Assembly (NCBI GenBank): GCA_964035545.1
Contig: OZ037772.1
Span: 8,425,150 to 8,489,149, forward strand
Length of the DNA: 64,000 bases
DNA from: Bugula neritina
Lineage: Eukaryota; Animalia; Bryozoa
Reading direction: 5' to 3'
The notes beneath the pieces were generated by a model, which ran no database searches, was not told the origin of the DNA, and saw only the letters and a program-made list of their open reading frames with translations. Position 1 is the stretch's first letter. Each line of letters opens with the position of its first letter. The position numbers and the translations under genes were made by a program. This document shows positions 26,781 through 59,235 of the stretch, one piece after another.

Positions 26781-29629
26781 ATGTCTCTGACTCCACCATG
26801 TAAGTATAATATACTATGAAAACTACTAATTGTTTGGTTTGCCATTATTTTGTGGTGGCTTTATTTATGCATCAATTGTAAAACACTTTCCCTCAACAGA
26901 ATTTGAACGACAGACCTCCAGTTTGTAAGCAGGCCTGCTAGCCAGTTACACCACAGGGGCCACTAGGTCAACTAATCACTATGATATTTATTAATAAGAT
27001 AATGAATAAAAATAATCTGTATAACTTAGGTGTAAACATTTTGTGTAGCAAATCAACTCGTGGGTATTTTGCTCCCATTAAGCTTATTGGGCATTATTGA
27101 CGGAATGTGTGTATGTTGGTGTGAGTGAGTGAGTGAGTGAGTGAGTGAGTGAGTGGGTGAGTGAGTGAGTGAGTGAGTGAGTGAGTGAGTGAGTGAGTGA
27201 GTGAGTGAGTGATTGAGTGGGTGAGTGAGTGAGTGAGTGAGTGAGTAAAGGAAATAGTGGGTGAGTGAGTGAATGGGTGAGTGAGTGAGTGAGTATGTGG
27301 GTGAGTGAGTGAGTGAAGGAAGGAGTGGATGAGTAAAGGAAGGAGTGAGAAAGTGAACTTTGAGTAAATATATCAATGTAAACTGGTCAAGGCTTTTTTT
27401 ACTTTGCAGATGTAGAACCACATGCACTATCTCAAACACCAAACAACCGAATGCAAGAACCTCTTCAGATATCTAAAAAGGATGTTGAGTGGACAGTTCC
27501 TGCTCTCTGTAAGACTTTTATTCAATGTAATAACTTTACCCTAAACTCAGTTCCTCTGACTTCCACAGTTGTTACAAATACTCAAGACTATGCAAACATA
27601 GAAACTTCAGTGTGTAATAGCTGCTTACCACAAGAACCTGATGTTCCTTTATCTGAAGTTATTTCTGAGGCTTTTGGAGTTTTATCTGAAGACTATTTAT
27701 CTGAAGATCCTGACCTTTACAGACAGGATCCATATTGTAGAGATAAGTATGGTGCTGAGTCGGATCCTTTTCTAACCAATAACAGTTCTGCGAGACATTT
27801 AGTGATTTTAGACTCTCAAAGTTTTAATACCAATGCAGGCAATCAAACTTTCCTTAATATGCTAACAGCAGTACCCAACACTTACATAGGAGAAGGTGTA
27901 GAAAATGAAGTTTTAGATACTTTTAGCTACCACCAACAATTAGAACTTCTCAGGAAACAAAGTTCAGTCCATGACAACTATCTACCAGAAGAAACTGATG
28001 TCCCTTCGTCTGAATTTATCTCTGAGGCTTTCACAGTTTTAGGACAGAATACTACAACAGAAGTCATCGCAACTGGTGAGTATGAATAGCCTATTATATA
28101 GATAGATAAAAATAAAATCACCAAAGCGTTTCCTCTAAATGCAATTGCTAATTAAATTGAATTATATTAAAGAAATATATTAAAGAAAAACAAAGATTGT
28201 ATATATTATACCAATAATTAGATTATAGCTTTACTTATTTACATTTCAGTTCCCACAGTTGATGCAACCAACCAAAACTCTTTTTTTAGTATGTCAAAAT
28301 CTTACACAGTCTTAAACCTGGCAAGATTTTTTACCTTATTTAATAATCTTCATAAACTTATCACAATTCCTAAACTGGTCATCTCTGTAAAAAAAACCCT
28401 GGTAGTACGATTTTTAAGCAGCTAGGCTGAGGACTTATTTCTTAAAGCACATTTTGTACAAGATTCAATGATCTCTACAAGCTCTGACTACTTTGAAATT
28501 TCTATCTCCATGAGAAGTTCTGATAGTAAAGTTTTTAGACAAACTTATCACCTGTTTGTAGTCTAGACACAGGAGAAATGATGGCTAGATGTACTTCTTG
28601 ACATCACTAACAGCTTTTACCAATGGTCAAACCCATGACCTTGTTTTAACTAATGTATACTGGTTTTAACCACAAGTGCACTAATTGTTTCTGGAGTTAA
28701 TTAATTTAATAAATCTTTCAATTGATTTAATTAGGCATGGTTTCTTAATTAGTGACATGCACATGGGTAACTGATTGAAATGCTTGCATGTTTTTCAAAA
28801 AAAAGTATTAGAATGTAATAAGAAACTTAAATAATTTATTAATGAATTTTGAATGTCAACATAATATCATTAGTACTGCTGTTTTACAGGTGAAATACCA
28901 GCGCATTTAAACAAAGGAGACACTTCTGAGAAGCTACCAGATCTAGTGTACAAAGAAGCACATGAATTTAAGTGGAGAGACAGTTCTAGAGAAATAAACA
29001 GAGATATACAAACTCAGGTTGTTCAAAAAGTGAATAACACTACCAACAAATATATAGATGCCATTGGTCAGAAAGAAAAAGTGATTAAAACGAAGACAAC
29101 TTTACATAATATTTGTGAGAATGAGTCAACACAAGAAGCTGGTCTTGAGAAGAACAAAGAGCAGCAGAGCAAAAAGAAACGTTTTCAATGTTCTCAGTGT
29201 AGCTACAAGGCAAGATACAAGTGTTTTCTCAACAGGCACATGAGAATACATACTGGAGAGAAGCCATTTATATGTGAAATATGTGGGTCTGCTTTTACCT
29301 GGAAAGATGCTCTTATTAAACATATAAGAACACACACCAGAGAAAAGCCATTTCCATGTCATATTTGTACAAGTGCATTTAGTCAAAGATTTACCCTGCA
29401 ACAACATCTCAAGACACATACTGGAGAGAAACCATTTTCATGTCATATTTGTAAAAATGCATTTAGTCTAAAATTTACGCTACAACAACATATGAAGACA
29501 CACACTGGAGAGAAACCATTTTCATGCAATGTCTGTAAGAAATCATTCACTCAAAAATGTGGTCTTCGTGTACATATGAGAACTCACACAGAAGAGAAGC
29601 CATTCTCATGCGATGTGTGTAAGAAATAA
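26781..29629 (+). CDS. C2H2 ZNF copy C, 5 complete fingers, 6th truncated by a premature TAA
   Basis: Exons 26781-26799, 27410-28075, 28250-28288, 28890-29629; near-identical to B outside the finger array. A TCA>TAA change stops the last finger; its remainder still reads to TAA at ~29686. Confidence 0.75.
27120..27350 (+). repeat. (GTGA)n microsatellite in intron 1 of ZNF C
   Basis: Direct. Confidence 0.95.
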
Positions 29630-30347
29630 TTCAATCAAAAAACAAGTCTTCTAAATCACACTAAAATGCATACTAGAAATTATTAATATGTTCTTCTATA
29701 ATCCTAGTTAGTGCAAATCAGCTGTCTGAACCTTCCTGTTACCTTCCTTATGAAAAAATATTCACGTAGAAAAATTAGCTTACACTTGGTTTCAAATTAT
29801 TTTAACTTGTACTTGACAGATAAATTAGGAAGAAAACTCCTTTATATTATTTTCATGAACATGCACATTACATACATATGTTAAAGACAGTATGTCTGAC
29901 AAATGGTTAGGGTGTTTAGATATCTGTATACTTAGATCTAAGATGAATATTATAATAATTGTAAGTTATGTTAATACAAGAAAATTATAAATTAAACTCA
30001 GACATGATTACATAATCAATATCTATAACTTTATTTGTGTGGAAATTGACAATTTGTCTTAGTTTTCTTACAACTAATTTTAGAAGATCTTATACTTAGT
30101 AAATATGTTTTATCTCAACTGTTTTTAGTTAATCATAGTTTTATGCCATAGTTGTTTAGGAATCATTTTGATGTTTAATGTTAGTAAGATTTTAGATTTT
30201 TTGAGTTATAGTTAACCAAAAATCTTTATCTTGTTCAATTTAAATGTTTGTTTTAATTTGTAACTAATGTGTTTACACACGGGAGTCTCAGTTCTGCTTT
30301 TTGTTCTACTGCGACATTAGTTTTTGTGAAATATAAATTAAATAAAA

Positions 30348-31129
30348 TAGAAATAAACAAAGATATACAAACTCACACTGATCAAAAAGTGAATAACACT
30401 ACCAACAAATCTATAGATACCATTGGTCAGAAAGGAAAAGTGATTAAATCGAAGACAACTTTACATAATATTTGTGAGAATGAGTTAACACAAGAAGCTG
30501 GTCTTGAGAAGAACAAAGAGCAGCAGAGCAAAAAGAAACGTTTTCAATGTTCTCAGTGTAGCTACAAGGCAAGATACAAGTGTTATTTCAACAGACACAT
30601 GAGAATACATACTGGAGAGAAGCCATTTATATGTGAAATATGCGGGTCTGCTTTCACCTGGAAAGATGCTCTTATTAAACATATAAGAACACACACCAGA
30701 GAAAAGCCATTTCCATGTCATATTTGTACAAGTGCATTTAGTCAAAGATTTACCCTGCAACAACATCTCAGGACACATACTAAAGAGAAACCATTTTCAT
30801 GTCATATTTGTAAAAATGCATTTCGTACCAGATGCAACCTACAGCGACATTTGAAGACACATACCGGAGAGAGACTATTTTCATGTCATATTTGTAAAAA
30901 TGCATTTAGTCTAAAATTTACCCTACAACAACATATGAAGACACACACTGGAGAGAAACCATTTTCATGCAATGTCTGTAAGAAATCATTCACTCAAAAA
31001 TGTGGTCTTCGTGTACATATGAGAACTCACACTGGAGAGAAGCCATTCTCATGCGATGTGTGTAATAAATCATTTACTCAAAAACCAAGTCTTCTAAATC
31101 ACACTAAAATGCATACTAGAAATTATTAA
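30348..31129 (+). pseudogene. ZNF copy D: orphan finger exon (7 intact fingers) lacking exons 1-3 and the normal acceptor
   Basis: The 3' flank of C runs directly into mid-exon sequence 'agaaataaacaaagatatacaaactcacactgatc' at ~30348. The ORF start at 30269 lies in non-coding flank. Confidence 0.7.
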
Positions 31130-32292
31130 TATGTTCTTCTATAATTTTAGTGAGTGCAAATCAGCTGTCTGAAACTTTCTGTTAACTTTCCTTGTGAAAA
31201 AAAGAAGTAGCTATTCACGTAGAAAAATAAGCTTACACTTGGTTTTAAATTATTTTAAATTATAATTGGCAGATAAAATAGGAAGAAAACGATTTCATAT
31301 TTTCATGAACATGTGCATTACATACATATGTTATAGACAGTATGTCTGATGATTAGTTAGTTAGGGGGTTTAGATATCTGCCTTTTTAAATCCAATATGA
31401 ATATTATAATAATTGTAAGTTATGTTAATACAAGAAAAGTAGAAAATGAACTTAGACATGCTCATATAATCAATATCTATAATTGTATTAGTATATCTAA
31501 GTTGACAATTTTTCTTAGTTTTCTTATATACTATTTTCAGAAGATCTTATAATAATAAAATATTTCTTGTCTGAGCTTTTTTTAGTCAATCAAAGTTTTA
31601 TGCCATAGTACTTATAAGAATAATTTTGATGTTTTATGTTAGTAAGATTATAGACTGTTTGAATTGTAAACCAAAAGTCTTTTTCTTGGTCAATTTAAAT
31701 CGTTGTTATATTTCACAGCCAATGTGTTTGCACAGTTTTGTTTTACTGCAACATTAGTTTTTGTGAAATATAAATTAAAGCATATAATTACTCTCAAGTT
31801 GAAATATTATATTCCAATTTTACTTTATTGAAATAAATTTACAGTTGGATAATTGTTTTAAAGTCTAGTGCCCTAACAAAGTTATAGTATACTATACAAT
31901 GTAGCCGTAGAACTAAGGCATACAAGGTTGTAGCTAGATGAAATAATCATTTGAATCAGCATATCAGTTTTATCTCGATAAGTTTATTGGTATACTTTAA
32001 AACTACTGATTATATTTTTGTCATGCCAAATTAAATTTCCCTCATAAGTTTGTCTTTACACAAGCAAACAGAGCATATAGCAATATTATTTGATTGCCAA
32101 AGATGCAGTTCTAACACATGGTTCCATTAGAGCTTTATTCACATACAATAGCCTACATAGTTCTGTAAGAATTAACTAGAGGTAAATAGCCATGATCATT
32201 CCGCTGTTAGATTACCCTGATGGCGAATATCTATTCAGAACAAGTTACTTACCTTCCATTGCCTCTCAGTTATATTCAGTTCATCTGCCATG

Positions 32293-32683
32293 TGTGGTAA
32301 ATTTATGTTGTGTGTGTGTGTCCTTTGTTGCCGAGATCGGTACTTCGGTCCTCCAAAACACCGATATGCCGATTCTCGGCATATCGGAATACCGAAGTAC
32401 CGAAATGCCGGATTCGGCATTTCGGATTCCCGAAGTGCCGATATTCGGTATTTCGGGCCTCCGATCTCGGCAAACAAAAGAATGTCTTTGTCCTGCATGT
32501 ATATAAAAGCCAGCGAGTTCCAGTATAGTTTAGTCTACTACTGGAGCTCGCTGGATAAAGACCATTGATTCACTCGGACTATACTACAATAAAGCTATCT
32601 ACTTTCTACCTTATTTCTCGCCTTGTTTCTCATAACAAGCATGTAAAGCACTAGTTTCATTCACAACCCACAAAACTATCACA
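32293..32683 (+). repeat. 5' LTR (TGTGGTA...TATCACA), 391 bp
   Basis: TG...CA ends with an imperfect 7-bp inverted repeat; TATA box 32500-32508; AATAAA 32588-32593; three substitutions versus the 3' LTR by eye. Confidence 0.95.
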
Positions 32684-32684
32684 T

Positions 32685-32702
32685 TGGTGGCAGCAGTGGG
32701 AT
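32685..32702 (+). promoter_or_regulatory. primer binding site, tRNA-Leu-type
   Basis: TGGTGGCAGCAGTGGGAT begins 1 nt after the LTR and is complementary to a tRNA 3' end ATCCCAC(T/C)GCTGCCA-CCA, typical of eukaryotic tRNA-Leu. Confidence 0.85.
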
Positions 32703-32734
32703 TCTACGAATAGCTAGTTGCTGAGAGGAATAGG

Positions 32735-33635
32735 ATGGCCCCAGGGGAGTCAGCCCCTGAGGCAACAGCAGCACCAGCCCTCACTGTTGAGGCGCTGGTA
32801 ACAGCCCTCCAAGGATTGCGGGGGCAAGGACAGGCATCACCTGGTAACAGGTATCGCCTCCAGCCCCCGACTTTCGGAGGAGATGGAGACGTGGAACAGT
32901 TCATCAAGGAGTTCGAGGACGTGGCCACCACCGCTGAATGGCCAGTACGGGTGCGCGTCCTCCAACTCCAGGGCCTGTCTAACAGGCCGGGCCAGGAACT
33001 TCGCACTGGGACCCGACGAAGCCCACATCATGCGGGCTCTTAGGGCCCGGTTCGGCCTGACCACGGAAGAGGCGTCAGACCAGCTACAAGTGATGAGGAG
33101 AGACCGAAGGACACCTCTGGAAGATCACGCTAACGAGGTAGAGCGCCTGGCTCAGGCTGCTTTCGGTCACGCCACTGGCGAAGATCGGAAGCGCCTCGTT
33201 TTTAACGCGTTCTTCCGGAGCGTGAACCACCCGGACCTCCAGCGGTACTGGCTGGCCACGAAGGTCAAGAGCCTGGACGAGGCACTAGAGATGGGGAAGG
33301 CCTACTTCCAAGTAGAAGAACCACGGAGGGCGAACTACGCAGCTCGCCAGGTGGCCGGAGATACAGAAGAGGTACCCCCAACCCCACAAGTGGCAGCAGC
33401 AGCTACTCCGTCGCCCGAGCAGACGCAGCTCAACATGCTGATGGGCATGATGAAAGGCCTGCAGGCTACGGTGGCGGAGTTGCAGCGCAACCAGACGGAC
33501 AGGCGGGCTCCCCGCTCGCGGGACGACCCTGTCCGCCCCCCTCTGCCCACTTGTTGGGAGTGCGGGATGCCAGGACATGTGAGAAGGCACTGCCCTAAGG
33601 GACAGAAGTCTTTAAACACCCGAGGCTCACGGTGA
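32735..33635 (+). CDS. gag: Gag (1-nt frameshift near 32968), C-terminal CCHC knuckle
   Basis: PPTFGG...EQFIKEFE...W capsid-like N-terminus in ORF 32735; ORF 32883 carries CWECGMPGHVRRHC. Confidence 0.88.
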
Positions 33636-33655
33636 ATTCCGCCACCCGTGGGCCC
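33611..33655 (+). promoter_or_regulatory. programmed -1 ribosomal frameshift signal (T TTA AAC plus downstream hairpin)
   Basis: The heptamer at 33611-33617 is in gag phase (TCT TTA AAC); the -1 frame is open into the protease ORF at 33632. Stem gctcacggtg...cacccgtgggc starts ~8 nt downstream. Confidence 0.85.
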
Positions 33656-36600
33656 CACGCCAATCCGGTCCGGGATAGGACTCGGAAAACAACAGAAGAA
33701 ACCTCTCCAGAGTCGACCTACATCGAGTGGCACGCAAACCGGAGATCTCGGAGACCGAAAGGCCTACCCGATCCTCCTGCCCTGCCACTCGATACCCGGA
33801 TGCAGCTAGAAGAAACCGGATGGCAGGCACCTCGGAGATCTCGGAGACCGCAAGGTCTACCCGATCCTCCAGCCTGGCCACTCCGTAACCGGTTCGCGGG
33901 GTTGCCCGAGGAGGTTGTGGAGGAAGATTCAGCTTACTCGCAAGAGTACCCCAAGCTACCCTCCCGACCTCAGAAAACCCCCGTTGTCTCTAAGACGAAG
34001 AGGAGGCCCGCTGTGCGGACCCAAGTTGTGTCTCCCCCAAGGACTGACCACTCCAGGAGCACCCAGCCATATGGAAGCAGCTACTTCCTGCCCGGAAAGA
34101 TTGCGGGTAAAGCTGCCACATTCCTACTGGATACTGGGTGCACTACCAACCTGCTGAGTAGGCGTATCTTTGACACTCTTGGTGCACGAGAGCGGGCGAG
34201 CCTCGAGCCGTATGAAGGTGCGCATGGTACGTTGGCGGACGGATCATGCATTCCTTTCTACGGCGTCATTTCACTACCTGGACGCGTCCGTGATCAAGCA
34301 ATTCACGAGACGTTCATAGTCAGCCAGCTGAAAGAGGACGCCATCTTGGGAATGCACTTCCTGGAGAAACACCAGTGTCACATGGATTTCCAGAAGTCAG
34401 TGGTGATGATGGCTGGGAAGGAACTTGTCTGTGTTGACAAGTTTGGCAGGCCCTTGGTGGGCGGAGTCCAGGTAGTGCGGGACTGCACAGTTCGGGGAGG
34501 TCCCAGGCGACTCTTCGATGCAGAGTCAACTGCAAGGGGATCGCCGGCCTGGGGATGGTTGAAGGAACGCACGGAGCCATCCGACTAGCAAACAGCCTGA
34601 ATTGGCTAGATTGTCGGCAAGAGCTCCTCGTGCAGTGCATCAACCCCTTCACGGAACCTGTCCGATTATCGGCCGGAGCGCTGGTGGGGAAGTACCACTC
34701 CATCCAGGAAGCGGATGTGGGTCCGGCACTGGAGACAGTGGCTGACACCCAGGGGAACCCCCCTCACACCAGACGAGGAGCAGTCCCGGAGCACCTGGCT
34801 GACCTGTATGGCGGAGCATGCGGGAACTGTACGAGTAGTACTGAACGCCAAGTACTGGCTCAACTATTCGCGGAGTACAGTGATGTCTTCAGTCGTGGCG
34901 ATGGAGACATGGGGCTGACTAAGGTTATCTCCGACGAGATACCCCTGGCAGCCGGCACCACTCCCATCAGGCAGCCTACCCGACGTCTAGGCCTGGAGAA
35001 GGAGAAGGAGGTGAGCCGACAGGTACAGGATCTTCTGGACCGGGATCTGATTGAGCCTGCCCACGGTGCGTGGAGCTCCCCAGTGGTTCTGATCAAGAAG
35101 AAGGATGGTAGCTGGAGATTCTGTGTGGACTACCGCAGACTCAACAGCGTTACCATCCAGGACGCCTACCCTCTCCCACGGATAGATGAGTCTCTAGATG
35201 CCCTCGCGGGTAGCAAGTACTTCAGTACTTTGGATCTGCTTAGCGGGTACTGGCAAGTGCCCCTCAGTCCTGATGCCCAGGACAAAGCAGCATTCATTAC
35301 TCGCGGCGGGCTCTGGAAATGGAAAGTACTGCCATTCGGACTAACGTCCGCTCCGGCAACATTCCAACGACTCATGGAGCAAGTCCTCAGTGGGTTACAC
35401 TGGAAGACCCTCCTCATCTATCTGGACGATTTCATTGTCATCTCCCCAGACTTCTCGACTCATGTCAGTCGTCTGCGGGAGGTCTTTGACCGCCTCCGGG
35501 CTGCTGGACTAAAGCTGAAGCCCTCCAAGTGTGCACTCCTGCAGCCAGAAGTCACGTACCTGGGCCATGTGGTTGGCCGTGATGGGGTCGCTACCGATCC
35601 AGAGAAGGTACAAGCTGTGAAGGAGTGGACTGTCCCCCGTGACCTCCCTGAGTTGCGTGCCTTCCTGGGCCTAGTAGGGTACTACCGGCAGTACATACCT
35701 GGGTTCGCAGGAGTGGCTCAGCCATTAAATTGGCTGACCGCAAAGGGAGTCCGGTGGCAGTGGACACAGGAGGAGCAGCAGGCATTCAACCACCTCAAGC
35801 AACGGCTAATGGAAGCGCCAATCCTGGCGTATCCTGATCCAGCCAAGGAGTACATCCTGGACACTGACGCCAGTGACCACAGCGTGGGAGCCGTCTTGTC
35901 TCAAGTCCAGGGTGGAAGTGAGGTGGTCGTGGCTTACTACAGCAAGACTCTCGCGGCCGCCGAGAAGAACTACTGCACCACTAGGAAGGAACTCCTAGCA
36001 GTAGTCAAGGCGGTCAAGCACTTTCGGCCATATCTGTATGGGAAATCGTTCCGTCTGCGAACAGATCATGCATCACTGATATGGCTGTGTAAACGTGCAG
36101 AGCCCTCGAGCCAGGTGGCTCGTTGGCTAGAGATTCTTGCCGAGTTCTCTTACCGGATAAAGCACCGTGCAGGCCGGAAGCATGGGAACGCCGACGGCAT
36201 GAGCCGCCGGCCGGTAGAGGACTGTAAGCAATGCCTGCACATTGAACAGCGGGACGGGGGACCCGCTCGCCTTGACGTGAAAGCAGAACTAGTGGAGGGC
36301 ACCACCTACTAGTGGGAGCACGGCCATCTTCGGACCGAAACCCACCAGGACGGTGTCCAGGCGCTCCACGCCAACCCTACTCTGCACCAGAATGTCAAGG
36401 AGCTGTGCCGACTCCAGGAGACGCTACCCGGCGCGGTAGCGGACATCTTCCGGGCCAAGAAGGAGGGCCGACGGCCTAGCGAGGAACAGCAGCGGCAGGG
36501 AGACGTTGAGTTCCAACTCCTCTGTCGTCGCTGGGATGCCCTCAAGGTCAGTCCTGATGGCCTCCTGATGATAACGTTAGCAGCAGACAACCGCCAGCAG

Positions 36601-38030
36601 AAGAGGGACCGCGTCATCTGTCCACGCGCCCTCCGGCGGGAACTGATCTGGGACACCCATAAGCAGGCTCATGCTGGAGTCAGTCGGGTTATCAGGTGTC
36701 TGCGGCTGCGTTGGTATTGGCCCGGAATGACTCGGGACGTACGACTGCGGGTACGGCAATGCGAGGTCTGCCAAGCTAGCAAGCATGGCCGCCCCACGGA
36801 AACCACTGGTCGACGCCGGCTGTACGCTGGTCGACCGTGGCAAGTAGTGGCGGTAGACCTCGTCGGGCCTATGCCGTTATCCGCCAGAGGGAACACCTGG
36901 ATACTGGTGCTCACGACCACTTTACCCGGTGGGTGGATGCTCTGGCTATTCCAGACGCCACCGCCCCCACGGTGGCCCGGACCCTGGACCAACATGTGTT
37001 CTTTTACCTCGGTTTGCCCGAGCAGATACATACGGACCAGGGTGCCCAGTTCCAGTCCCAGCTCATGGGACACCTCTGCCGGATATGGGGGGTGAACCAG
37101 AGTCGGACCACCCCATATCACCCGCAAGGGAACGGAGTCGTAGAGCGGAACAACAGGATGTTGGGTGACGCGCTCCGGAGCCTGCTACTTGGTCGAGGTC
37201 AGGAAGAATGGGACGTGGTGCTGCCGCAGATCATGCGGGCTTACCGCAGCATACCACACTTCAGCACGCAGGAGACCCCAAACTTCCTGATGCTAGGCCG
37301 AGAGACGCGGGTCCCGGAACACCTGACGTACCATGTTCCTGCCCCCGAGTCACCGGTACACGAATATGTGGAGGGTCTGATGGACATCATGGGCAAAGCT
37401 CATCCGCTCGTGCAAAACTCATGCGCTGCGCACCCAGCAGTGGCAGACCCGCACAGAGGACTCGGAGGAGCCCCCGTTGTACCAAGTGGGAGACTGGGTC
37501 TGGATGGTGAGCTACCGTAGGCGACGCGGACAGTCGGCTAAGCTTCAGCCCAACTTCGTCGGCCCCTACTGCGTAGTGGAGGTGCTGCCCAACCACACGT
37601 ACCGTGTGGAGCGCTCTGGACAGATCTCTGTCCAGAGCGAGCAGCGCCTCAAACCTTACCATGCCAGCCCAGACGCGGTGGGTCAGGCTCCACCCCTCCT
37701 GGAGCCCCACCGTCAGCCCAACCGTCGAGGACGGGCCACCCAGCCCCGAGAGGTGGAGATTATGGTCCCCAGGGAGACGGACCAGGAGCAGGCCGCCTTG
37801 ATAGAGCAGCTGGAGCGGCAGCAGAGAGCGGAGCGGGAACAGGAACAGCGGCAAGCCCTTGGATCACAACCCTTCCCGGGGGAGGACACCCCCACCCCCG
37901 TACGGGGTGAAGACGGGGACCCCCCTACTAGGGCAGCCCAGGAGCCACCAACACCACCAGTGCCTGTTCCACTTGAGAGGAGCCAGCGGCCAAGAAGACC
38001 TCCCAGGTACCTGGCAGACTATGCTGTAGG
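33611..38030 (+). pseudogene. pol: Pol (aspartic protease, RT, RNase H, integrase), disrupted
   Basis: LLDTGC protease; WRFCVDYR, LPFGL and YLDD RT; DTDAS/ELLAV/TDH/NADGMS RNase H; HHCC, VDLVGP/HTDQG/VERNN and GPY integrase, ending RSQRPRRPPRYLADY. Lesions: frameshifts near 34493, 36916 and 37400-37430, and a TAG at 36310. Confidence 0.93.
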
Positions 38031-39612
38031 GCACCTGGAGTGGCCCCCTCCTGAGGACGACCCCCCCCACACTGACTACCACCCCATCTTGGTTGGAAAT
38101 TCCCTCCATCATCCCGGAGGATTCCACCAAGAAGAAGAAATGGCTGACCGAATTTCGGAAGACACTCGATCACGCGAGTTGTCTTTCCGAAATGCGGGGG
38201 AAATTCCCACGAGCCACGCAACTCGGGCTTCAGCAGGTAAAACTTCTGAAGCACGAGGTTCGGCCATTTCTCATTCTGATTTCACACAGCTCGCACGGCA
38301 GTTACAGCTCAAGCTAAATTCTGATTCTAATACTCATTTTGATTTTAACACTGTTCTCCAGACGCTATCAGCAGCTATGGGAATTACTTTACCAGACAGG
38401 CAATCAGGTATTTCTTCTAGATTAGATCCTCCAGTTGCGGAGTCTAGTCAAACTAAAGTAGACTGGTCTTTACTAGACTTACTTGGTTCTGATTTCTTAG
38501 AACCGGAGGCCGAGATGGATCTTGGAGATGACTCTGCCATTGATACTTTGTTAAATCACGACGTAGGCTCAGTCAATTTCTGCGATACACCTCGGCCCTC
38601 GGTTTTTAATTTAACTCCATACACACCTGTGCCGAATTTCGGCGATAGTGAGACCGGCTTATCACAGCCTCTACTATCTATTCTAGAGGAGCGTATGGAC
38701 ATTGAGGAGGCCAGTCGGTCCGACTCCCCTCTCCCACCGGCCCTTGCTTCGGCTTCTACCAGCCAGCAGGCCGCCACCTCCTCCACAGAGGTGTGTTCCG
38801 CCATCGCTAGTGGCCCTGACCCCAAACCGGTCGAGCTCCAGCTCACGGCCGGGGAGGAGCAGGGCATCCTACACGGCGACCACCTGCCAACAGAAGAAGA
38901 TAACTCCCCAATACTGGCCCTGCCTCGGGCCCTGGTCGCCCGCCAGTATTGGGTGACTGGACCCACCAATCTTAAGATTGGTGAAGCTTGCGGTGAGCCG
39001 GGCAACCGCATCTGCCATGAGTGTAAGAGGAAGTTCTCCTCTGCACGGCGGTTGCGTGTACACACCCCACAGCACTACATCAATGTGTTTTGCCCGTGTG
39101 GGGAGTTCTCCTACCAGAGAGACTATGTGTTGAGACATCAACGCATAGCTCACTGCCACACGGGCTACACGTTTGCTGTAGACCAGGCCTCCTTTCCCGA
39201 GTTTCGGGACCTGGTGCTGCCACACGTGGCGGATCCCCATAAATGGGCTGCTCTCGCCCTGGGATTCCCCGCATGTAGGCCTGTTCGGGAAGAAGAAGGG
39301 GAGCCCGCCGCGACACCCCAACCGGCAGCCACCCAGCCACTTCGGGTCATGCTGGCACGGGTCGGACCAGGCGCCAGGACCGATTCATCGGACCTGGGCC
39401 CCCGGCCCTCGGCGGCGGGCGAGAAGCAGACGCACCGCCAGCGACGTCCTACCCATGGTACCACCGACCGCCCCAGACACCAGACGTCGGCCCAGTTGGC
39501 AGAGGAGGTACAGCATCTCCGCCGGCAGCTCCGCAGGTATGAGGAGGAGCTGGGGCAACTCAGGAGACGTGTTAGCCGCCTGGAGCGGGGCCGATCTGGA
39601 GACTGCCGCTGA
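37477..39612 (+). CDS. integrase C-terminus continuing in frame into a ~530-aa accessory region: acidic segment, two C2H2-type fingers, coiled coil
   Basis: 711-aa ORF. CHECKRKFSSARRLRVHTPQH (Cx2Cx12Hx3H) and CPCGEFSYQRDYVLRHQRIAH (Cx1Cx12Hx4H) at 39013-39153; heptad LAEEVQHLRRQLRRYEEELGQLRRRVSRLE at ~39495-39585; in-frame aaaATGG at 38140. Confidence 0.8.
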   Translation: MYQVGDWVWMVSYRRRRGQSAKLQPNFVGPYCVVEVLPNHTYRVERSGQISVQSEQRLKPYHASPDAVGQAPPLLEPHRQPNRRGRATQPREVEIMVPRETDQEQAALIEQLERQQRAEREQEQRQALGSQPFPGEDTPTPVRGEDGDPPTRAAQEPPTPPVPVPLERSQRPRRPPRYLADYAVGHLEWPPPEDDPPHTDYHPILVGNSLHHPGGFHQEEEMADRISEDTRSRELSFRNAGEIPTSHATRASAGKTSEARGSAISHSDFTQLARQLQLKLNSDSNTHFDFNTVLQTLSAAMGITLPDRQSGISSRLDPPVAESSQTKVDWSLLDLLGSDFLEPEAEMDLGDDSAIDTLLNHDVGSVNFCDTPRPSVFNLTPYTPVPNFGDSETGLSQPLLSILEERMDIEEASRSDSPLPPALASASTSQQAATSSTEVCSAIASGPDPKPVELQLTAGEEQGILHGDHLPTEEDNSPILALPRALVARQYWVTGPTNLKIGEACGEPGNRICHECKRKFSSARRLRVHTPQHYINVFCPCGEFSYQRDYVLRHQRIAHCHTGYTFAVDQASFPEFRDLVLPHVADPHKWAALALGFPACRPVREEEGEPAATPQPAATQPLRVMLARVGPGARTDSSDLGPRPSAAGEKQTHRQRRPTHGTTDRPRHQTSAQLAEEVQHLRRQLRRYEEELGQLRRRVSRLERGRSGDCR

Positions 39613-39900
39613 GACTATTTGTTTAGTATTTTCTTTCCTATTCTTATTTCCTTGTTTTTTTATATATATATATATGTGTGTAAGTTCTTCATGTAATGTA
39701 TGTACCTATTCATGCTCTGTTTTCTTGTGTGTGCATAATTTTCCCTGTTTTTTTTGTATTATTAATGTCACTACATGTTTGCCGTATTTGTTTTTGTGTG
39801 TTACTTATCAACTGTGTGTTTTATTGTCGTGTCTTTTCCTGTTGCGTGTTTGTGTTGTGTACGCCTCTTTATCGGAAAGCATGCTTTCCGATGGGGGATG

Positions 39901-40290
39901 TGTGGTAAATTTATGTTGTGTGTGTGTGTCCTTTGTTGCCGAGATCGGTACTTCGGTCCTCCGAAACACCGATATGCCGATTCTCGGCATATCGGAATAC
40001 CGAAGTACCGAAATGCCGGATTCGGCATTTCGGATTCCCGAAGTGCCGATATTCGGTATTTCGGGCCTCCGATCTCGGCAAACAAAGGAATGTCCTTGTC
40101 CTGCATGTATATAAAAGCCAGCGAGTTCCAGTATAGTTTAGTCTACTACTGGAGCTCGCTGGATAAAGACCATTGATTCACTCGGACTATACTACAATAA
40201 AGCTATCTACTTTCTACCTTATTTCTCGCCTTGTTTCTCATAACAAGCATGTAAAGCACTAGTTTCATTCACAACCCACAAAACTATCAC
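39901..40290 (+). repeat. 3' LTR (terminal A missing), preceded by a short purine tract GGGGGA (39893-39898)
   Basis: Direct repeat of 32293-32682. Confidence 0.95.
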
Positions 40291-40454
40291 TGACTCAACC
40301 ATGTAAGTTTAGTGTTCTGTGAAAGCTATTATTTGTTTGGTTTGCCATTATTTGTATAACTTTGATGTAAACATTTTGTGTAGCAAATCAACTCGTGGGT
40401 GTTTTACTCCCATTGAGCTTATTGGGTATTATTGAGGGAATATGTGTATGTTGG

Positions 40455-40980
40455 TGTGAGTGAGTGAGTGAGTGAGTGAGTGAGTGAGTGAGTGAGTGAG
40501 TGAGAGAGTGAGTGAGTGAGTGAGTGAGTGAGTGAGTGAATGAGTGAGTGAGTGAATAAAGGAAGGAGTTAGTGAGTGAGTAAAGAAAGGAGTGAGTTAG
40601 TGAGTAAAGGGAAAGAGTGAGTGAGTGAGTAAAAGAAGGAGTGAGTGAGTGAGTAAAGGAAGAAGTGAGTGAGTGAGTGAGTGAGTGAGTGAGTGAGTGA
40701 GTGAGTGAGTGAGAGAGTGAGTGAGTGAGTGAGTGAGTGAGTGAGTGAGTGAGTGAATGAGTGAGTGAGTGAATAAAGGAAGGAGTTAGTGAGTGAGTAA
40801 AGAAAGGAGTGAGTTAGTGAGTAAAGGGAAAGTGTGAGTGAGTGAGTAAAAGAAGGAGTGAGTGAGTGAGTAAAGGAAGAAGTGAGTGAGTGAGTGAGTG
40901 AGTGAGTGAGTGAGTAAAAGAAGGGATGAGTGAGTGTGTAAAGGAAGGAGTGAGTGAGTGTGTAAGGGAAGGAGGGAGTG
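40455..40980 (+). repeat. expanded compound (GTGA)n/purine-rich tract in intron 1 of ZNF E
   Basis: Direct; includes an internal ~220-bp higher-order duplication. Confidence 0.95.
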
Positions 40981-43900
40981 ACAGAACTTTGAGTAAATAT
41001 TTTAATGCAAACTGGTAAAGGCTTTCTTTACTTTGCAGATTTAGAACCACATGAACTATCTCAAACGCCAAGCAACCAGATGCAAGAACCTCTTCAGATG
41101 TCTAAAAAGGATGTTGAGTGGACGATTCCTGCTCTCTATAAGACTTTTATTCCATGTAATAACCTACCTTACCCTAAACTCAGTTCCTCTGACTTCCACA
41201 GTTGATACAAACACTCAAGACTATGAAAACATAGAAACTTCAGTGTATAACAGCTGCCTACCTGAGGAACCTGATGTTCCTTTATCTGAAGTTATCTCTG
41301 AGGCTTTTGCAGTTTTATCTAAAGACTATTCATTCAAAGATCTTGATCCTTACAGACAGGAGCCATATTGTAGAGATGAGTATAATGCTGAGTGGAATCC
41401 TTTAGTAACCAATAACACCTCTTTAAGACATTCAGTGAATTTAGACTCTCAAAGTTTTAATACCAATGCAGGCAATCAAACTTTTCTTAATATGCTAACA
41501 GCAGTACCCAACACTTATATAGAAGAAGGTGTAGAAAATGAAGTTTTAGATACTTTTAACACCCACCAACAATTAGAACCTCACAGGACACAAAATTCAA
41601 TACATGACAACTATCTACTAGAAGAATCTAATGTTCCTCAGTCTGAAGCTATCTCTGAAGCTTTTACAGCCTTAGAACAGAACACTACAAGAGAAGTCAT
41701 ATCAACTGCATGGTGAGTATGATTAGATAGATAAAAATAAAACCACTAAAGCTTTTCCTCTAAATGCAATTGCTAATTAAATTGACTTATATTTAAGAAA
41801 TATATTTAAAAAAAACAAAGAATATATATTTACCAAGAACTAGATTATAGCTTTACTTACTTACATTTCAATTCCCTCAGTTGATGCAACAATGCAACTA
41901 AGACTTTTTTCTAGAAGCTTCAGTATAAGGCAACTATGTACCAAAAGAATCTGATGTTCTTTCATCTGATTTTTTTTCTGAGGAACTTGGAGCTTTAGGC
42001 GGGCTAAAGAGTGCACAAAATTACAAATCATTGGGTTAGTATGTCAAAATGTTATACGGTTTTAAACCTGATAACATTTTTTAGCTAATTTAATGATCTC
42101 CATAAACTTATCACAATTCTTAAACTAGCCATCTCTGTGAGAACCCTGGTAGTACACTTTTCTAAGGTGGCAACAGATTATTTATTGTCAAAAAACTATT
42201 TTATTGCAAAACCAATAAAAACTGAGTTAAGTTTTATCCTTTTTTTGCAAAACTAATAATGCCCATGAACTCATAACTGTTTGTAAAGACACAGTCTCTG
42301 TGAGAATCTGTGGTGGTAAAATTTTAACGGCTCAATTTCTATTGTAAAGAAGGAGAAATTATGACTGGATGCTCTTAACATGACATCATCAAGGAGAATT
42401 ATCAATACTTAAACCTTTGTCTTCTTCTAAGGACTATTCATGGTTCCTCCCAAGTTTATTTATTTTATTAAAGCTTTGCATAAACAAAGTGAAAATGTTT
42501 TAAACATTAAACTGTGTGCATTTTGTTTAAAGAAGAAATAAGAATTTAAGGAAGCATTCTAATGCGGTCATATTTTAATTTGGGTTGTGTTAATAAAGTT
42601 CAAAGCAATGAATAAAGCTTGAATCGTAAAATTATTGTTCGTACTGTTGTTTTACAGATAGAATGCAAGAGGGTGAAAATACAGGAGACCCTTCTGAACT
42701 TTTATCTGATGTACTATACAGAGGAACCCTCGAATACAAGTGTAGAAACTATCCTAGAGCAATAAGCAATGATATGAAAAATTACACTAATCTAAAGGTA
42801 TGTGACATTGCCCACAAATTTATCAATGCTACTGGTCAGAAAGAGGTAAATAAAGAGAAAACAACTTTACATAATATTTTTGAGAATGGGTGGACACATG
42901 AGGCTAGTCTCAAAAAGAATAAGGAACAGCAGAGAAAAGACAAATGTTTTCAATCTTCACTGTGTAGCTACAATGCAAGACACATGAGTCATCTCAACCA
43001 GCATATGAAAAAACACACTGGAGAGAAACCATTTTCATGTCAGATTTGTAAAAGTGCATTTACTCACAAAACTACCCTAAAACGACATATGAAGACACAC
43101 ACTGGAGAGAAACCATTTTCATGTCAGATTTGTAAAAACCCATTTAGTCAGAGAAGTGCCCTACAGCAACATATGGGAACACACACTAAAGACAAGCCGT
43201 TTTCATGTGATGTGTGTGGGAAATTATTCAGTCGGAAATATACCCTTGTGACACACATGAGAACTCACACTGCAGAGAAACCATTTTCATGTCATGTTTG
43301 TAAACATTCATTTGGTTTCAAACAAATCCTACAGCTACATATGAGGACACATACTAAAGACAAGCCTTTGTCATGCAATGTCTGTAATAAATCATTCAAT
43401 TGAAAGGGTAACCTTGTGACACACATGAGAACTCACACTAGGGAGAAACCATTTCTATGCCATGTGTGTAAGAAATCATTCACTCACAAAGAGAGTCTTC
43501 ATTCACACACTAAAATACCTACTAAGAATCAATCTGTTCTTTCAAAATATAAGTGACTATAACAAATTAGCTGTATTAGACTGCAACTTTTCATAAAAAG
43601 TCTTGCACAGGAAAATTACCTCACAAGTGGTGATGTTTGAAAATTGTTCTAAATTTTACTTGAAAGGTGGAATGAGAAGGAAACTTATTTATTTCCATGT
43701 TTAGAAACATTCAAATTAACCAACCACATAAGTTATATTTATTCTAATTACAGTTGAAAGTTTATCTTTATTTTTTATTAAAATTGTATTTACGAGATTC
43801 AATATAAAACGTAGTCTAAAACAGGATGTGATCTTAAAAAGTATTTTCTAGTTTAATTGTTGAAGTTTCATGTCATAAGTACACTTAGGTTTTGTTTTAT

Positions 43901-45153: not shown

Positions 45154-48121
45154 ATGTCTGTGATTAAACCATGTAAGTATAAAATAATATAGAAGTAATT
45201 AGTTGATTAGCTTAAGCCACTATTTTATGATGGCTTTCTTTATCTATTATTCATCAGAAAGAAGATTGATTAAAATCAATTGTATAACTTAAGTGTAAAC
45301 ATGCTGAGTGCCAGTAAATAAATTTGTGCATATTTTACTTTCATTGGCTTTTTGGTATTATTGTGCAAATATGTGTATGTTGGTGTGAGTGAGTGAGTGA
45401 GTAAGTGAGTGAGTGAGTGAGTGAGTGAGTGAGTGAGTGAGTGAGTGAGTGAGTGAGTGAGTGAGTGAGTGAGTGAGTGAGTGAGTGAGTGAGTGAGTGA
45501 GTGAGTGAGTGAGTGAGTGAGTGAGTGATTGAGTGAGTGAGTAAATGAGTAAGTGCATGCGTGCTTGAGTGTGTGAGTGTTTGAAATCATCATGTATAGG
45601 AATTCTTGAATCTTGAGTAGATGTTTTTATGTAAACTTATAAAGGCTGTCTTTTATTCACAGTAATAGAACCACAGGCAGCTCTCCAAACACCAAGCAAA
45701 CAGATGCAAGAGCCATATCAGATCTCTAAAAATTATGTCTGGTGGAAGAGTCCTGCTCTCTGTGAAAACTTTGTTCAAAATCATGGCTTCTCTGTAAGCT
45801 CAGTTGCTATGACGTCTACAGTTGATACAAACCTTCCCTGTTTTGTGAACATGGATACTTCGCTATATAATTATAATAACTGTCGACCAGAAGAACCTGA
45901 TGTTCCTCTGTCTGAAGTTATTCCTGAAGCTTTTAGCATTTTAAGTGGAAAGTCTTCATTTGAAAATTGTGATACTTACAGGCTGGATCCATATTGTAGA
46001 GATGGGTATAGTCCTGAGTCGGATTCTTTAGTAACCAACTTCACTCCTGTCAGACATTCTGTGATTTTAGACTCTCAAAGTTTTAATGTCAATACAGACA
46101 ATCACACTTTCTTTAACGTTCCAACAGCAGCATTTGATATTTACGTAGAAGATAATGTTAAGAGTGGGTCTTCAGATACTTTTAGTTACAACCAACAACT
46201 AGAACTTCTCAGGAAACAAAATACAGTACAAAAAAACTGTCTACCAGAAGAGACTGATGTTCCTCTGTCTGAAGTTATCTCTGAGGCTTTTCAAGTTTTA
46301 GGACTGAATACTACAACAGAAGTCATCTCAACAGGTAAGTGTGTTTAGATAGACAAAACGAAAACCATCAAATGTCTCTTTCACTGCAATTGATGATTTA
46401 AATTAACATCACATGTTATTGAAGAAACAACAAAAGAAATTTATTTTGCTAAAGATCAGTTTACAACTTTACTCATGTACATTTCAGTCCTCACGGTTGA
46501 TACACTCAACAATGCCTCTTTTCCCGTGGAAGCCACAGTATATGAAAAATACCTATCAGAAAAATCAAATGTTCCTCTGTATGAAATTATCTCTGACACT
46601 CTTAAAGTTCTAGGGTTGAATGCCACAGGGGACTGCAAATCATCAAGTAAATATATGTATAACACATGTTAAAATCTGTTCAGCAACCTGAAAGATCAAT
46701 TTAAATTGAATTTAACTGGTGACTGATTTAACTATGAAAGCCTGAATGGTAAAGTTTTTCAGCAGGCTGACAACATATTTTCTATTGTGACAATGGAAAA
46801 CTTGTAGCTGAATGCTCCCCCTAACACCAAAAATGACCGTTACCAATAATAAACACCATGACTTTATAGTTCTCATTAAGTTATATATAGCCATCATCTT
46901 CTCCAGTAGTGCACTAGCTGCTTTCAAAAGTAGTTGATTAAATAACTCGTTTAATTTATCTAGCTAATTGTGCTTTCATCATTGGTGGCATATTGGTAGC
47001 TGATTAAATTGGATTCATGTTTTTTTTAAAAAAGTCCAAATATATGTATTTGAATGTATTAGTAACGTTAAATAAACTATGAATGCAAATTGAATGCAAT
47101 CATACTATTTGTAATTTACTGTTTATAACATTGTTTTACAGGTAAAATACAATCGTGTTTTCATACAGGAGATACTTCTGAAAATCTACCAGATGTTCTA
47201 TACAAAGAAACTCATGGATATAAACTGAGAGACCATTCTAGAAATATAAACAAAAATATGGAGGCTGATCACAAAGTGCATAACAATACAAACATATCTA
47301 TGGATGTTGTTGAGCAGACAAAAGAAGTGATCAAAGAGAATACAACTATACAAGATGTTTGTGAGTATGGGTTAACACAAGAAGCTGCTCTTAAGAAGAA
47401 TACAGAAAAGAATGGTGCAAGAAACTGTTTTCAATGTTCACAATGTAGCTACAAGGCAAAACGCAGGAGTCATCTCAACCAGCACATGAGAATACATACT
47501 GGGAAAAAGTCATTTATATGTGAAATATGCGGGTCTGCTTTTACCTGGAAAGATGTGCTCATTAACCATATGAGGACACACACTGGTGAGAAACCATTTT
47601 TATGTCATATTTGTAAAAGTGCATTCAGTCAAAGATGTACCCTACAGCAACATATTAGGACACACACTGGGGAGAAGCCATTTGCATGTCATATTTGTAG
47701 AAGTGCATTCAATCGTAAGACTACATTAAGGCAACACATGAGGACTCACACTGGAGAGAAACCATTTACATGTCCTTTTTGTAACCATGCATTCAGTCAA
47801 AGAATTACCCTGCAAAGACATATGAGGACACATACTGGAGAGAAACCATTTTCATGCAAAGTGTGTAAGAATTCATTCACTCAAAAGAGTAACCTTGTTT
47901 CACATATGAGGACTCACACTGGAGAAAAACCATTTTCATGTCATTTTTGTAAAAGTGCATTCAGTCAAAGAACTACCCTGCAACGACATATGAGGACTCA
48001 CACTGGAGAGAAGCCATTTCCATGTCATGTGTGTAATGAGTCATTTACTCGTAATCAGGCCCTTCAGTCACATGCTAAAATACATTCTAAGAATCAGTCG
48101 GTTCCACAGTATTCTAAGTGA
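45154..48121 (+). CDS. C2H2 ZNF copy F, 8 fingers, intact, ~609 aa
   Basis: Exons 45154-45172, 45663-46334, 46488-46646, 47142-48121; phase-1 GT-AG introns; ORF open (1830 nt). Confidence 0.88.
45385..45555 (+). repeat. (GTGA)n microsatellite in intron 1 of ZNF F
   Basis: Direct. Confidence 0.95.
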
Positions 48122-57988: not shown

Positions 57989-59235
57989 TTATGGTAGCGT
58001 AGATTGATTTTTAGTGTGTATTTTATTGTGTAAATAAAGGTTAGCTTTTTGGTTGAATGATTTATTACACACATTGCATAGAAATGGTTTCTCTCCTGTA
58101 TGTGTCCTCATATGTTGTTGTAGAAGAGCATTGCGACTGAATGCACTTTTACAAATATGACATGGAAATGGTTTTTCTCCAGTGTGTGTTCTCAAATGTA
58201 CAACAAGATTCGATTTTTGAGTAAATGACTTATTACACACATTGCATAGAAATGGTTTCTCTCCATTGTGAGTTCGCATATGTAAAACTAGACCACATTT
58301 TCGAGTGAATGATTTCTTACACACATTGCATAGGAATGGTTTCTCTCCATTGTGAGTTCGCATATGTAAAACTAGACTACATTTTCGAGTGAATGATTTC
58401 TTACACACATTGCATACAAAGAGTTTCTCTCCTGTATGTATCCTCATATGCCGTTTCAGGGTAGTTCTGTGACTGAATGAATTTTTACAAAAATGACATG
58501 GATATGGTTTCTCTCCGGTGTGCGTCCTGATATGACTGATGAGAGCATTTCTCCAGGCAAAAGCAGCTCGGCATATTTCACATATAAATGACTTTGTTCC
58601 AGTATGCTTTATCATGTGCCGGTTGAGATTACCCATGTGTCTTGTCTTGTAGCTACATAGCGAACATTTAAAACATTTCCTCTCAATCTGCTGCTCTGTA
58701 TTCTTCTCAACACCAGCCTCTTGTGTTGATCTACACTCACACACATCATAGACAGTTGTCTTCTCTTTGATCACTTTTTCTTTATGATCAAAGAGCTCTA
58801 TAGATTTTTTGGCAAAGTTATACACTTCTTGATCAGTCTGAGTTTCTTTTTTATATGCACTGCTGCTTCTAATATTGCCTTAAACATGCATAATTTTTGT
58901 TGAAAAAAAAACACATGCTTTTAATTCTGCTACCCATGTGTGCCTAATTCTTTACAGAATTTTACACAATTTTAAAAACAGTCATGATTTGATGGAGCCG
59001 GATTATTACATTCGCTTCAAAACGTGCATATCAGGTTGTTGAACATTATTTTGACATGTGTTAAACAAATACTAACCTGATGATTTGTAGTCCACTGAAA
59101 GATTCCATCCTAAAACTTTAAAAACCGCAGAAACGGTTTCAGACAATGGATTATCAGGTTCTTCAGGTAGAGAGTGGTCATATGTTGAAGCTTCTCTAAG
59201 ATGAGAGTGTTGGTTGCTTGCATCAACTGTGGGAA
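57989..59235 (-). pseudogene. ZNF copy I: exon 3 (59235-59077) plus an 8-finger exon (ORF 58825-57989); exons 1-2 not found
   Basis: Eight intact fingers; exon 3 is open, with motif LPEEPDNPLSETVSAVFKVLG. Homology to the family stops near 59375 and the normal finger-exon acceptor is missing. Could still be expressed. Confidence 0.65.

Follow-up and report, generated by a model that had tools for sequence, protein, structure and literature searches.

A conserved two-zinc-finger accessory protein encoded behind integrase in a bryozoan Gypsy lineage

The 64,000-nucleotide stretch of Bugula neritina DNA analysed here (the window) contains a Ty3/Gypsy element at 32291-40289 in which the reading frame of integrase does not end where integrase ends. 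What does this additional coding region, which we call the module, encode, does it belong to the element, and what might it do there? Accessory genes separate 'simple' from 'complex' retroelements, and those outside the retroviruses are, to our knowledge, very few: env, chromodomains, Cer1 CERV and a small number of captured enzymes. Our analysis shows that this region, the last 1.6 kb internal to the LTRs apart from an untranslated stretch, codes for an accessory protein that is conserved in a Gypsy lineage of bryozoans. The protein has the build of a transcription factor in the position of env, in a barely studied phylum, and is found either fused to integrase or as an ORF3, with paralogues in the host.

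The element and its interrupted pol

The element is young, with LTRs that are 99.2% identical; blastn aligned its two ends over 393 nt with 3 mismatches, the repeats lying 7608 nt apart. Paired LTRs, a protease-RT-RNase H-integrase order and a gag with a CCHC knuckle place it in Ty3/Gypsy. The pieces of pol match, in order, the Pfam families Asp_protease_2, RVT_1, RT_RNaseH_2, Integrase_H2C2, rve and SH3_Tf2-1, so that the H2C2 zinc domain, the core and the SH3-like domain of integrase are all represented. A possible 5-bp target duplication (32285-32289 and 40290-40294) matches at 4 of 5 bases. The features of the element outside the module are as follows.

32291-32681, + strand: 5' LTR (TG...CA), from blastn of both ends and direct reading
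32328-32473, unstranded: U3 array of palindromic 8-nt units (TTCGG/CCGAA), lying immediately 5' of the TATA-like box
32500-32507: TATA-like box of the 5' LTR, direct reading
32588-32593: AATAAA of the 5' LTR, direct reading
32685-32702, + strand: putative primer-binding site (TGG..., 3 nt past the LTR), direct reading only
32883-33635, + strand: gag, unbroken as seen (ORF list; 277 open codons)
33552-33593: CCHC knuckle of gag, pattern match
33632-38022, + strand: pol, broken (Pfam on the pieces as they stand)
37978-38022, + strand: integrase tail motif, end of pol
39613-39898, + strand: AT/T-rich untranslated stretch after the module stop, direct reading
39893-39898, + strand: purine run (putative polypurine tract) abutting the 3' LTR, direct reading only
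39899-40289, + strand: 3' LTR, from blastn and direct reading
39936-40081: U3 palindromic array in the 3' LTR

A first-pass annotation of this DNA, made from the letters alone, had counted five lesions in gag and pol. Five discontinuities are indeed present (one stop and four frame changes), but the one at the gag/pol junction, a -1 frame change where a slippery heptamer lies in register, may be a natural programmed frameshift. Pol is then damaged by a single in-frame stop and by three other frame changes, integrase being hit by two of these, and because pol is broken the window copy is unable to make a full Pol. The annotation had also pointed to the intactness of the module beside the lesions in gag and pol. 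We do not retain this as an argument: at that lesion rate the chance of 1.6 kb escaping is 0.21-0.40, hence the contrast is no evidence by itself.

The open frame behind integrase

The frame of the C-terminal SH3-like domain of integrase runs on uninterrupted to a stop codon at 39610-39612. It had been described as open for about 530 residues, which agrees with the 528 stop-free codons that we count past the tail motif (38026-39612), the other two forward frames carrying 14 and 32 stops. A chance open frame with accidental finger-like spacing would be favoured by the GC content of the element (54-62%), which lowers stop frequency, and long antisense ORFs are also present in the module region. 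However, the probability of no stop by composition is about 9e-9, none of 5000 shuffles was stop-free, and the region has 171 homologues, conserved zinc ligands and a confidently predicted fold; we consider this explanation refuted. The parts of the module are listed below.

38026-38889, + strand: bridge and N-terminal part of the module, predicted disordered
38461-38562, + strand: conserved acidic/hydrophobic motif (34 residues, 11 D/E, no K/R)
38920-39279, + strand: compact two-zinc-finger domain (AlphaFold, about 120 residues, pLDDT 95-98)
39013-39075, + strand: finger 1, C2H2, Cx2Cx12Hx3H
39091-39156, + strand: finger 2, C2HC, CxCx12Hx5C
39280-39486, + strand: Pro-rich basic linker, predicted disordered (16% K/R; pLDDT 51-76)
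39487-39597, + strand: C-terminal helix with heptad (coiled-coil) repeat (AlphaFold residues 200-236, pLDDT about 90)

The acidic stretch, the two fingers and the heptad repeat lie where the first-pass annotation had placed them, and structure prediction, which it had proposed as a check, gave a compact finger domain, a disordered linker and a long terminal helix. The N-terminal part (38026-38889) is 16% D/E and rich in Ser/Thr and Pro; AlphaFold on 37960-38889 returned a mean pLDDT of 54.8 and no helices outside residues 106-121, 129-140 and 170-178. GC3 drops to 0.35-0.39 at 38077-38676. Within this region the acidic motif, which is short and amphipathic, contains a brief predicted helix (38467-38493) and is conserved in relatives, where it is seen near the N-terminus, including in the ORF3 proteins P0039 and P0135. 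An ATG at 38140 had been suggested as a separate start. It is present, in the context gaaATGG rather than aaaATGG as first given, but the Met is not conserved in relatives and we rejected it as a conserved start.

In the finger domain conserved helices flank both fingers, and the model predicts that fingers and helices pack together as one globular domain. Finger 2 had been given as Cx1Cx12Hx4H. The Cys at 39154-39156 is common to 89% of the family whereas the His one codon before it is common to only 8%; the fourth ligand is therefore this Cys and the finger is CxCx12Hx5C. The linker (39280-39486) has a basic cluster that, by its sequence, looks like a nuclear localisation signal, and basic clusters occur at the equivalent place in relatives. 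The heptad segment (39496-39591) has a hydrophobic spacing of 4,3,4,3,4,3,4,3.

Pfam gave only sub-threshold zf-C2H2 and weak coiled-coil matches in the extra region; zf-C2H2 scored 18.8 bits and missed the gathering threshold of 25.2, and at E<=0.01 it was found in only 8-11 of 96 members. Searched singly against PDB sequences, the protein had no match, and Foldseek gave nothing at E<=1e-3 against either the PDB (best E 0.38) or predicted viral structures. The family profile did match solved C2H2 proteins over profile positions 66-119 (Aart 4.9e-8, HIC2 5.4e-8, SALL3 8.7e-7), the matches to DNA-binding C2H2 fingers (Aart, HIC2, SALL3/4) ranging from E 5e-8 to 1e-4, and it matched GCN4-type coiled coils at about 1e-3. 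The module thus resembles Krueppel-type C2H2 proteins in the spacing of finger 1 and in its profile likeness to tandem fingers (E 5e-8). It differs from them in the 5-residue gap between the fingers with no TGEKP, in a finger 2 that starts with CxC and ends in Cys, and in the predicted packing of fingers and helices in one globular domain without a structural neighbour.

The region had also been said to be neither a chromodomain nor an env, and this holds: no Chromo family match appeared even at E<=10, no transmembrane segment was found (maximum 19-residue hydropathy 0.83), and no glycoprotein occurred among the fold matches to the PDB or predicted viral structures. A bZIP reading was rejected. 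Pfam gave no bZIP match in the extra region, and the predicted helix begins after the disordered basic cluster, so that the basic region is not continuous with the zipper.

Relatives, selection and origin

A protein search with the module returned 171 matches, 33 of them at E<=1e-30, none of which carries a Pfam family or functional name. All named family members are bryozoan (Bugula neritina and Watersipora subatra). An alignment-based protein search for further relatives gave nothing new, and 104 pattern matches to the family alignment in metagenome contigs yielded 0 confirmed members. The two-finger domain family is one that no library names.

The homologue search and the selection analysis that the first-pass annotation had called for both came out in favour of a conserved, element-encoded region. 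The Cys/His spacing is kept: across 96 relatives each of the eight zinc ligands is conserved at 89-98%, with the ligands of finger 1 at 94-98%, and all eight are retained in 55 of 77 complete members. Values of dN/dS rose from 0.13-0.19 in the finger core through 0.23-0.37 in the tail to 0.40-0.56 in the N-terminal part, and these codon comparisons show that the module is under purifying selection, which is strongest on the fingers. Ratios well below 1 between subfamilies, together with the fixed place of the module beside pol in lineages that are 25-75% identical, argue for selection within the element lineage. The sister loci were picked via predicted proteins and the sample is hence biased towards open modules. 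Several sister copies are degraded, with a fragmented pol, and have a module frame that is open over 244-572 codons.

Module and integrase tail are read in one frame in the window's subfamily. The tail motif also stands in the module's frame in P0157 (locus L006), in L015 and in the clusters P0101, P0122, P0095 and P0059; P0014 spans the integrase-module junction directly past the tail motif, and L002 and L003-5 carry the SH3 domain of integrase and the module colinearly within one frame. A search for fusions of integrase and module, restricted to lengths of 391-1244 aa, gave only P0156 and P0157, and the best 150 of the 171 matches include no long Pol-module protein. In two distant relatives with an uninterrupted pol, L013 and L014, the module is instead a separate ORF3 in another frame, which starts 34-107 nt past the pol stop. 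The reported fusion behind integrase is therefore shared by several sister lineages but is a trait of the subfamily, and the module needs no covalent link to integrase. A programmed frameshift between integrase and module was rejected, since the direction of the frame relation varies from one sister copy to another.

The core of the module also occurs in multi-exon host genes of bryozoans, and in Watersipora one such locus additionally produces isoforms that bear arrays of classical C2H2 fingers. Identity between the cores of module and host paralogues is 33-39% and their coiled coils are not alignable; the host paralogue P0170 also bears a C-terminal helical repeat. In a rough neighbour-joining tree of the cores, element-linked and host-annotated members interleave, but because the tree is without support values it does not give the direction of transfer. 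The module is likely to have come from the host, from genes other than the neighbouring ZNFs. Capture from those neighbours, already discounted in the first-pass annotation by the missing TGEKP linker, was rejected on that ground and on the lack of similarity to them (best E 0.69). The locus offers a natural case for asking by what route regulatory or targeting proteins pass from hosts to retroelements, or the other way, and whether self-encoded DNA-binding factors in LTR retrotransposons are commoner than annotation shows.

Possible roles in the element

Several known systems offer comparisons. The chromodomain of chromoviruses sits directly after integrase and steers the integration complex. 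The module would similarly be a chromatin- or DNA-reading addition right after a Ty3/Gypsy integrase, but it exceeds the chromodomain 4-5 times in size, carries a predicted multimerisation helix of its own and, in distant relatives, forms an ORF by itself. Complex retroviruses encode the transactivators Tax, Tas/Bel1 and Tat as separate accessory genes 3' of pol that are expressed from spliced mRNAs; a separate ORF3 is seen in L013 and L014 but not in the window. With its acidic segment, a putative part for binding nucleic acid and the predicted ability to self-associate, the module would be a plausible parallel in logic, by analogy; PDB sequences, PDB folds and predicted viral folds gave no sequence or fold likeness to retroviral transactivators.

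Errantiviruses, including bryozoan ones, have an env-type third ORF 3' of pol (PMC13524379), and the term 'zinc finger' is absent from that paper. The module shares with this env a position 3' of pol that is known from some invertebrate Ty3/Gypsy lineages, but has neither its transmembrane segment nor its glycoprotein fold. In the portion of PMC10309623 available to us, CERV of the C. elegans Ty3/Gypsy element Cer1 is numbered as part of the Cer1 polyprotein and is not an envelope; it is made from a spliced mRNA and works in the nucleus for the element. The module is like CERV in its 3' position and in-frame arrangement and unlike it in its fingers, no zinc-finger domain figuring in that portion's description of CERV, by which the two were compared. 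Captured extra ORFs in LTR retrotransposons of bdelloid rotifers and a captured demethylase domain in an orchid Ty3/Gypsy element, as excerpts of PMC5408684 and PMC9289625 describe them, are likewise conserved host-like coding modules added to an element, although of a different domain kind.

From its architecture we infer, tentatively, a nuclear, multimeric, nucleic-acid-binding accessory protein, which most likely regulates (activates) the LTR of its own element; among the readings considered this is the one that we favour, while giving it somewhat less than an even chance. The protein would enter the nucleus, multimerise via its coiled coil, bind nucleic acid with its finger domain and act in trans for the element, most likely by activating its LTR. 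In the fused subfamily the product would need to be released from Pol, whether by the element's protease or via a spliced mRNA as in Cer1.

A candidate target in the window's subfamily is the U3 array, whose dense 8-nt palindromes before the TATA box would suit a dimeric binder. It reaches 17 TCGG/CCGA in 150 nt, where the median over the window is 0, is made of inverted repeats (fold z-score -13.4), aligns with arrays in the sister loci L001, L007 and L009, and persists between sister subfamilies that show 26-45% difference in their module proteins. In the stretches examined for the distant ORF3-type relatives L012-L014 no comparable density was found downstream of ORF3; array and module may hence not be co-distributed, and we rejected the array as a universal partner of the module. 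That the element encodes a sequence-specific transcription factor of its own, which descends from a host zinc-finger gene family and binds the U3 array as a dimer, is a doubtful proposition. If true, a self-encoded factor on U3 would form a positive-feedback circuit like those of complex retroviruses, independently arisen in an invertebrate LTR retrotransposon.

Counted against regulation of the LTR are the in-frame fusion in the window's clade, which agrees no less well with a role attached to integrase, the missing likeness to viral transactivators, the array unseen for L012-L014 and the unconserved Met at 38140; C2H2-like fingers are, moreover, also able to bind RNA or protein. The main rival, unlikely though to be taken seriously, is that fingers and coiled coil, attached to or binding integrase, guide the integration complex towards particular DNA or chromatin. 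Module and integrase tail share one frame in the window and many relatives, the module occupies the position of the chromodomain, and the long linker, predicted to be disordered, would suit a tether. Against such steering stands the separate ORF3, in another frame behind an uninterrupted pol, in L013 and L014, and the single insertion observed here shows no clear target motif and an imperfect target duplication. A factor of the Cer1 CERV or Rev/Rex kind, which would bind unspliced element RNA for export or packaging, seems improbable to us. Zinc fingers accompanied by a basic cluster and a helix for multimerisation are able to bind RNA. The position and in-frame arrangement are those of CERV in the available portion of PMC10309623, but no homology to such proteins was found in PDB sequences, PDB folds or predicted viral folds, and the best profile matches are DNA-binding fingers.

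Two further explanations draw on the host paralogues, and to both we give lower standing than to regulation of the LTR. A copied host zinc-finger protein might act as a decoy that competes or pairs with its paralogues and so blunts host control; the shared core, the C-terminal helical repeat of P0170 and the interleaving of element and host members in the rough tree would agree with this, but with so low a core identity and with coiled coils that cannot be aligned we hold it to be rather improbable. Finally, the module could be a captured host exon that is idle for the element, or could be open because the host uses it. The open modules of degraded sister copies and the existence of host paralogues point that way, whereas these loci form a sample biased by their choice via predicted proteins, and intactness in the window has P 0.21-0.40 under neutrality. 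We regard an idle or domesticated module as very improbable given the low dN/dS between subfamilies and its constant position beside pol.

The element and the open frame behind its integrase

The LTR retrotransposon occupies window positions 32291-40289 and is bounded by two LTRs of 393 nt each that differ at 3 positions (99.2%). Its GC content is 54-62% (window 32001-40000) against ~30% in host sequence, and sister copies repeat this contrast. The pol domains were searched piece by piece, as they stand, and the open pieces gave the Ty3/Gypsy order in Pfam: protease, RVT_1, RT_RNaseH_2, Integrase_H2C2, rve and SH3_Tf2-1. A CCHC knuckle is present in gag. Gag-pol lies in six pieces and hence has five discontinuities. 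The -1 change at the gag/pol junction coincides with an in-register slippery heptamer and may be the natural programmed frameshift; pol itself is broken by an in-frame stop and by three frame changes, two of them in the integrase.

After the integrase tail motif (37978-38022) the frame, which is also that of the integrase SH3-like domain, stays open for 528 codons with a stop at 39610-39612, in agreement with the ~530 aa proposed in the first-pass annotation. The other two forward frames contain 14 and 32 stops across this extra module, and the probability of a stop-free frame by composition alone is ~9e-9. The intactness of the module had also been set against five lesions in gag and pol; the five discontinuities are there, but the contrast is not significant (P 0.21-0.40). 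The parts of the module, on the forward strand, lie where they had been placed:

38461-38562, acidic stretch
39013-39075, finger 1
39091-39156, finger 2
39496-39591, heptad segment

As claimed, Pfam found no chromodomain in the module, and it contains no transmembrane segment. GC3 falls to 0.35-0.39 at 38077-38676 (the bridge and acidic part of the extra frame), a compositional drop that hints at a mosaic origin.

The element is flanked by host tandem C2H2 ZNF genes, a cluster with 84-nt finger periodicity:

24355-25224, C2H2 ZNF genes
28946-31129, C2H2 ZNF genes
42663-43403, C2H2 ZNF genes
47258-48121, C2H2 ZNF genes
57989-58825, C2H2 ZNF genes

The flanks on the two sides are paralogous (28099-28393 and 41724-42143, 85-92%), and therefore the element is located within a tandemly duplicated ZNF array, in which 28990-29380 and 30349-30739 form a further paralogous pair (95-98%). 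The view that the fingers were not captured from these neighbours holds, as likeness between module and ZNFs is absent (best E 0.69). A (GTGA)n microsatellite of ~126 copies lies at 40456-40960, 170 nt 3' of the 3' LTR.

A zinc-finger family and its predicted fold

Of 1.84 billion representative proteins, scanned in full, 171 matched the module at E<=1e-3 and 33 of these at E<=1e-30, with a best identity of 74%; none of the 171 carries a Pfam family or functional name. The closest come from two JGI samples, on contigs tagged AY690838 (the Bugula neritina mitochondrial genome accession), and the named members are all bryozoan (KAF6040922.1 and KAF6040923.1 from B. neritina, XP_067940964.1 and XP_067944745.1 from Watersipora subatra). 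A cheilostome bryozoan is thus the probable source of the window. The domain is present twice per protein in P0011 from Watersipora and in the Logan protein P0044.

The core common to the relatives is the finger region. In a 96-member alignment the Cys/His spacing of finger 1 is conserved as expected (C 94%, C 98%, H 98%, H 96%), and the finger 2 ligands are C 96%, C 96%, H 90% and C 89%. Finger 2, annotated as Cx1Cx12Hx4H, is thus indeed a finger, but of C2HC type, because the His taken as fourth ligand is common to only 8% of relatives and the Cys to 89%. All eight zinc ligands are retained in 55 of the 77 complete members. Among solved structures, the DNA-binding C2H2 fingers of Aart (4.9e-8), HIC2 (5.4e-8) and SALL3/4 match the profile built from the family, and GCN4-type coiled coils match the tail of that profile at ~1e-3.

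AlphaFold, run with the family alignment, predicted a compact domain at module residues 11-130 (38920-39279, pLDDT 95-98), a disordered Pro-rich and basic linker, and a helix spanning residues 200-236. Predicted disorder extends over the N-terminal 290 residues, broken by short helices, the acidic motif among them. Foldseek returned no structural neighbour from the PDB or from predicted structures of viral proteins (best E 0.38), its weak matches being tandem C2H2 fingers.

Genomic position and selection

Sister loci were examined as host contigs with flanks of up to 3.5 kb (4-5 kb around host-annotated proteins). Wherever an element-type locus has upstream sequence visible, the module sits on the 3' side of integrase or RNase H, and these loci place it in a GC-rich block with AT-rich flanks around. 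Tail motif and module share a frame, within the window's clade, in P0157 at locus L006 (41% identical), in locus L015 and in protein clusters P0101, P0122, P0095 and P0059, and the protein P0014 covers the integrase-module junction directly after the motif. The SH3 domain and module share one frame at L002 and L003-5 and are in different frames at L001, L006, L007/8 and L009. The direction of shift varies by copy, which argues for indels; a programmed frameshift between integrase and module was rejected on this inconsistency. L001 and L002 are the same locus in two JGI samples and disagree on the shared frame of tail and module. Either the low-complexity tail region is polymorphic for indels or it invites assembly error, and any reading of single frame changes there is the weaker for it. 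The in-frame ATG at 38140, suggested as a separate start, fared poorly, its Met not being conserved among relatives.

Two distant relatives have an uninterrupted pol (1088 codons at L013, at least 1155 at L014) that stops 14-18 residues past the tail motif, and the module begins as ORF3 107 or 34 nt later in a different frame. It is thus an accessory gene of the lineage, with fusion to integrase a subfamily state.

NG86 dN/dS, taken over the open module frames in the window and in five sister loci, was 0.13-0.19 for the finger core, as expected under purifying selection, 0.23-0.37 for the linker and coiled coil and 0.40-0.56 for the N-terminal part, all values being rough since dS is high (0.5-2) and saturated for some pairs. 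Collectively our data show that at the env position the element encodes a zinc-finger and coiled-coil protein that is conserved and under selection.

Two neighbouring features were seen. On the minus strand just 3' of the sister element, L007 (5979-6464) and L008 (4282-4767) carry a 161-aa RVT_1 fragment from an older retroelement that is adjacent or nested. L003 (5139-6131) and L004 (3752-4744) each have a further gene call in AT-rich DNA, 1.6 kb downstream of the module gene and, at exactly 330 aa, of the same length; tblastn of the window's frame did not match it.

The U3 array, candidate functions and host paralogues

Both LTRs carry an array directly upstream of the TATA box:

32328-32473 (5' LTR U3) and 39936-40081 (3' LTR), palindromic array of 8-nt TTCGG/CCGAA units, 146 nt

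Its fold z-score is -13.4. Alignable arrays of variable copy number occur in sister subfamilies L001/2, L007/8 and L009, and no comparable array density was found downstream of ORF3 in the available stretches of L012-L014, the distant ORF3-type loci.

The module protein would enter the nucleus, multimerise, bind nucleic acid and act in trans. Regulation of the element's own LTR is, tentatively, the leading candidate role. Searches made only with the module protein as query returned no likeness to Tax, Tas/Bel1, Tat or Rev. Tethering of integrase is a rather unlikely role, and handling of RNA, as by the Cer1 accessory protein CERV (PMC10309623), is distinctly improbable. We regard a decoy against host paralogues as the least probable of these functions.

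Such paralogues do exist. Locus L010 of B. neritina (VXIV02000093.1, 5001-16169) contains P0170 (EB796_000763), a multi-exon gene, and after it a second gene call. In P0170 the core and C-terminal helix share a single large final exon, and the 5 kb around the gene contain no pol. P0173 (EB796_000764, the next locus tag) is a paralogue on that contig and has the two-finger core. In Watersipora a 52-kb locus has, among its products, isoforms with classical C2H2 arrays. Core identity between the window and host paralogues is 33-39%, and in a rough NJ tree host-annotated and element-linked members are interleaved.
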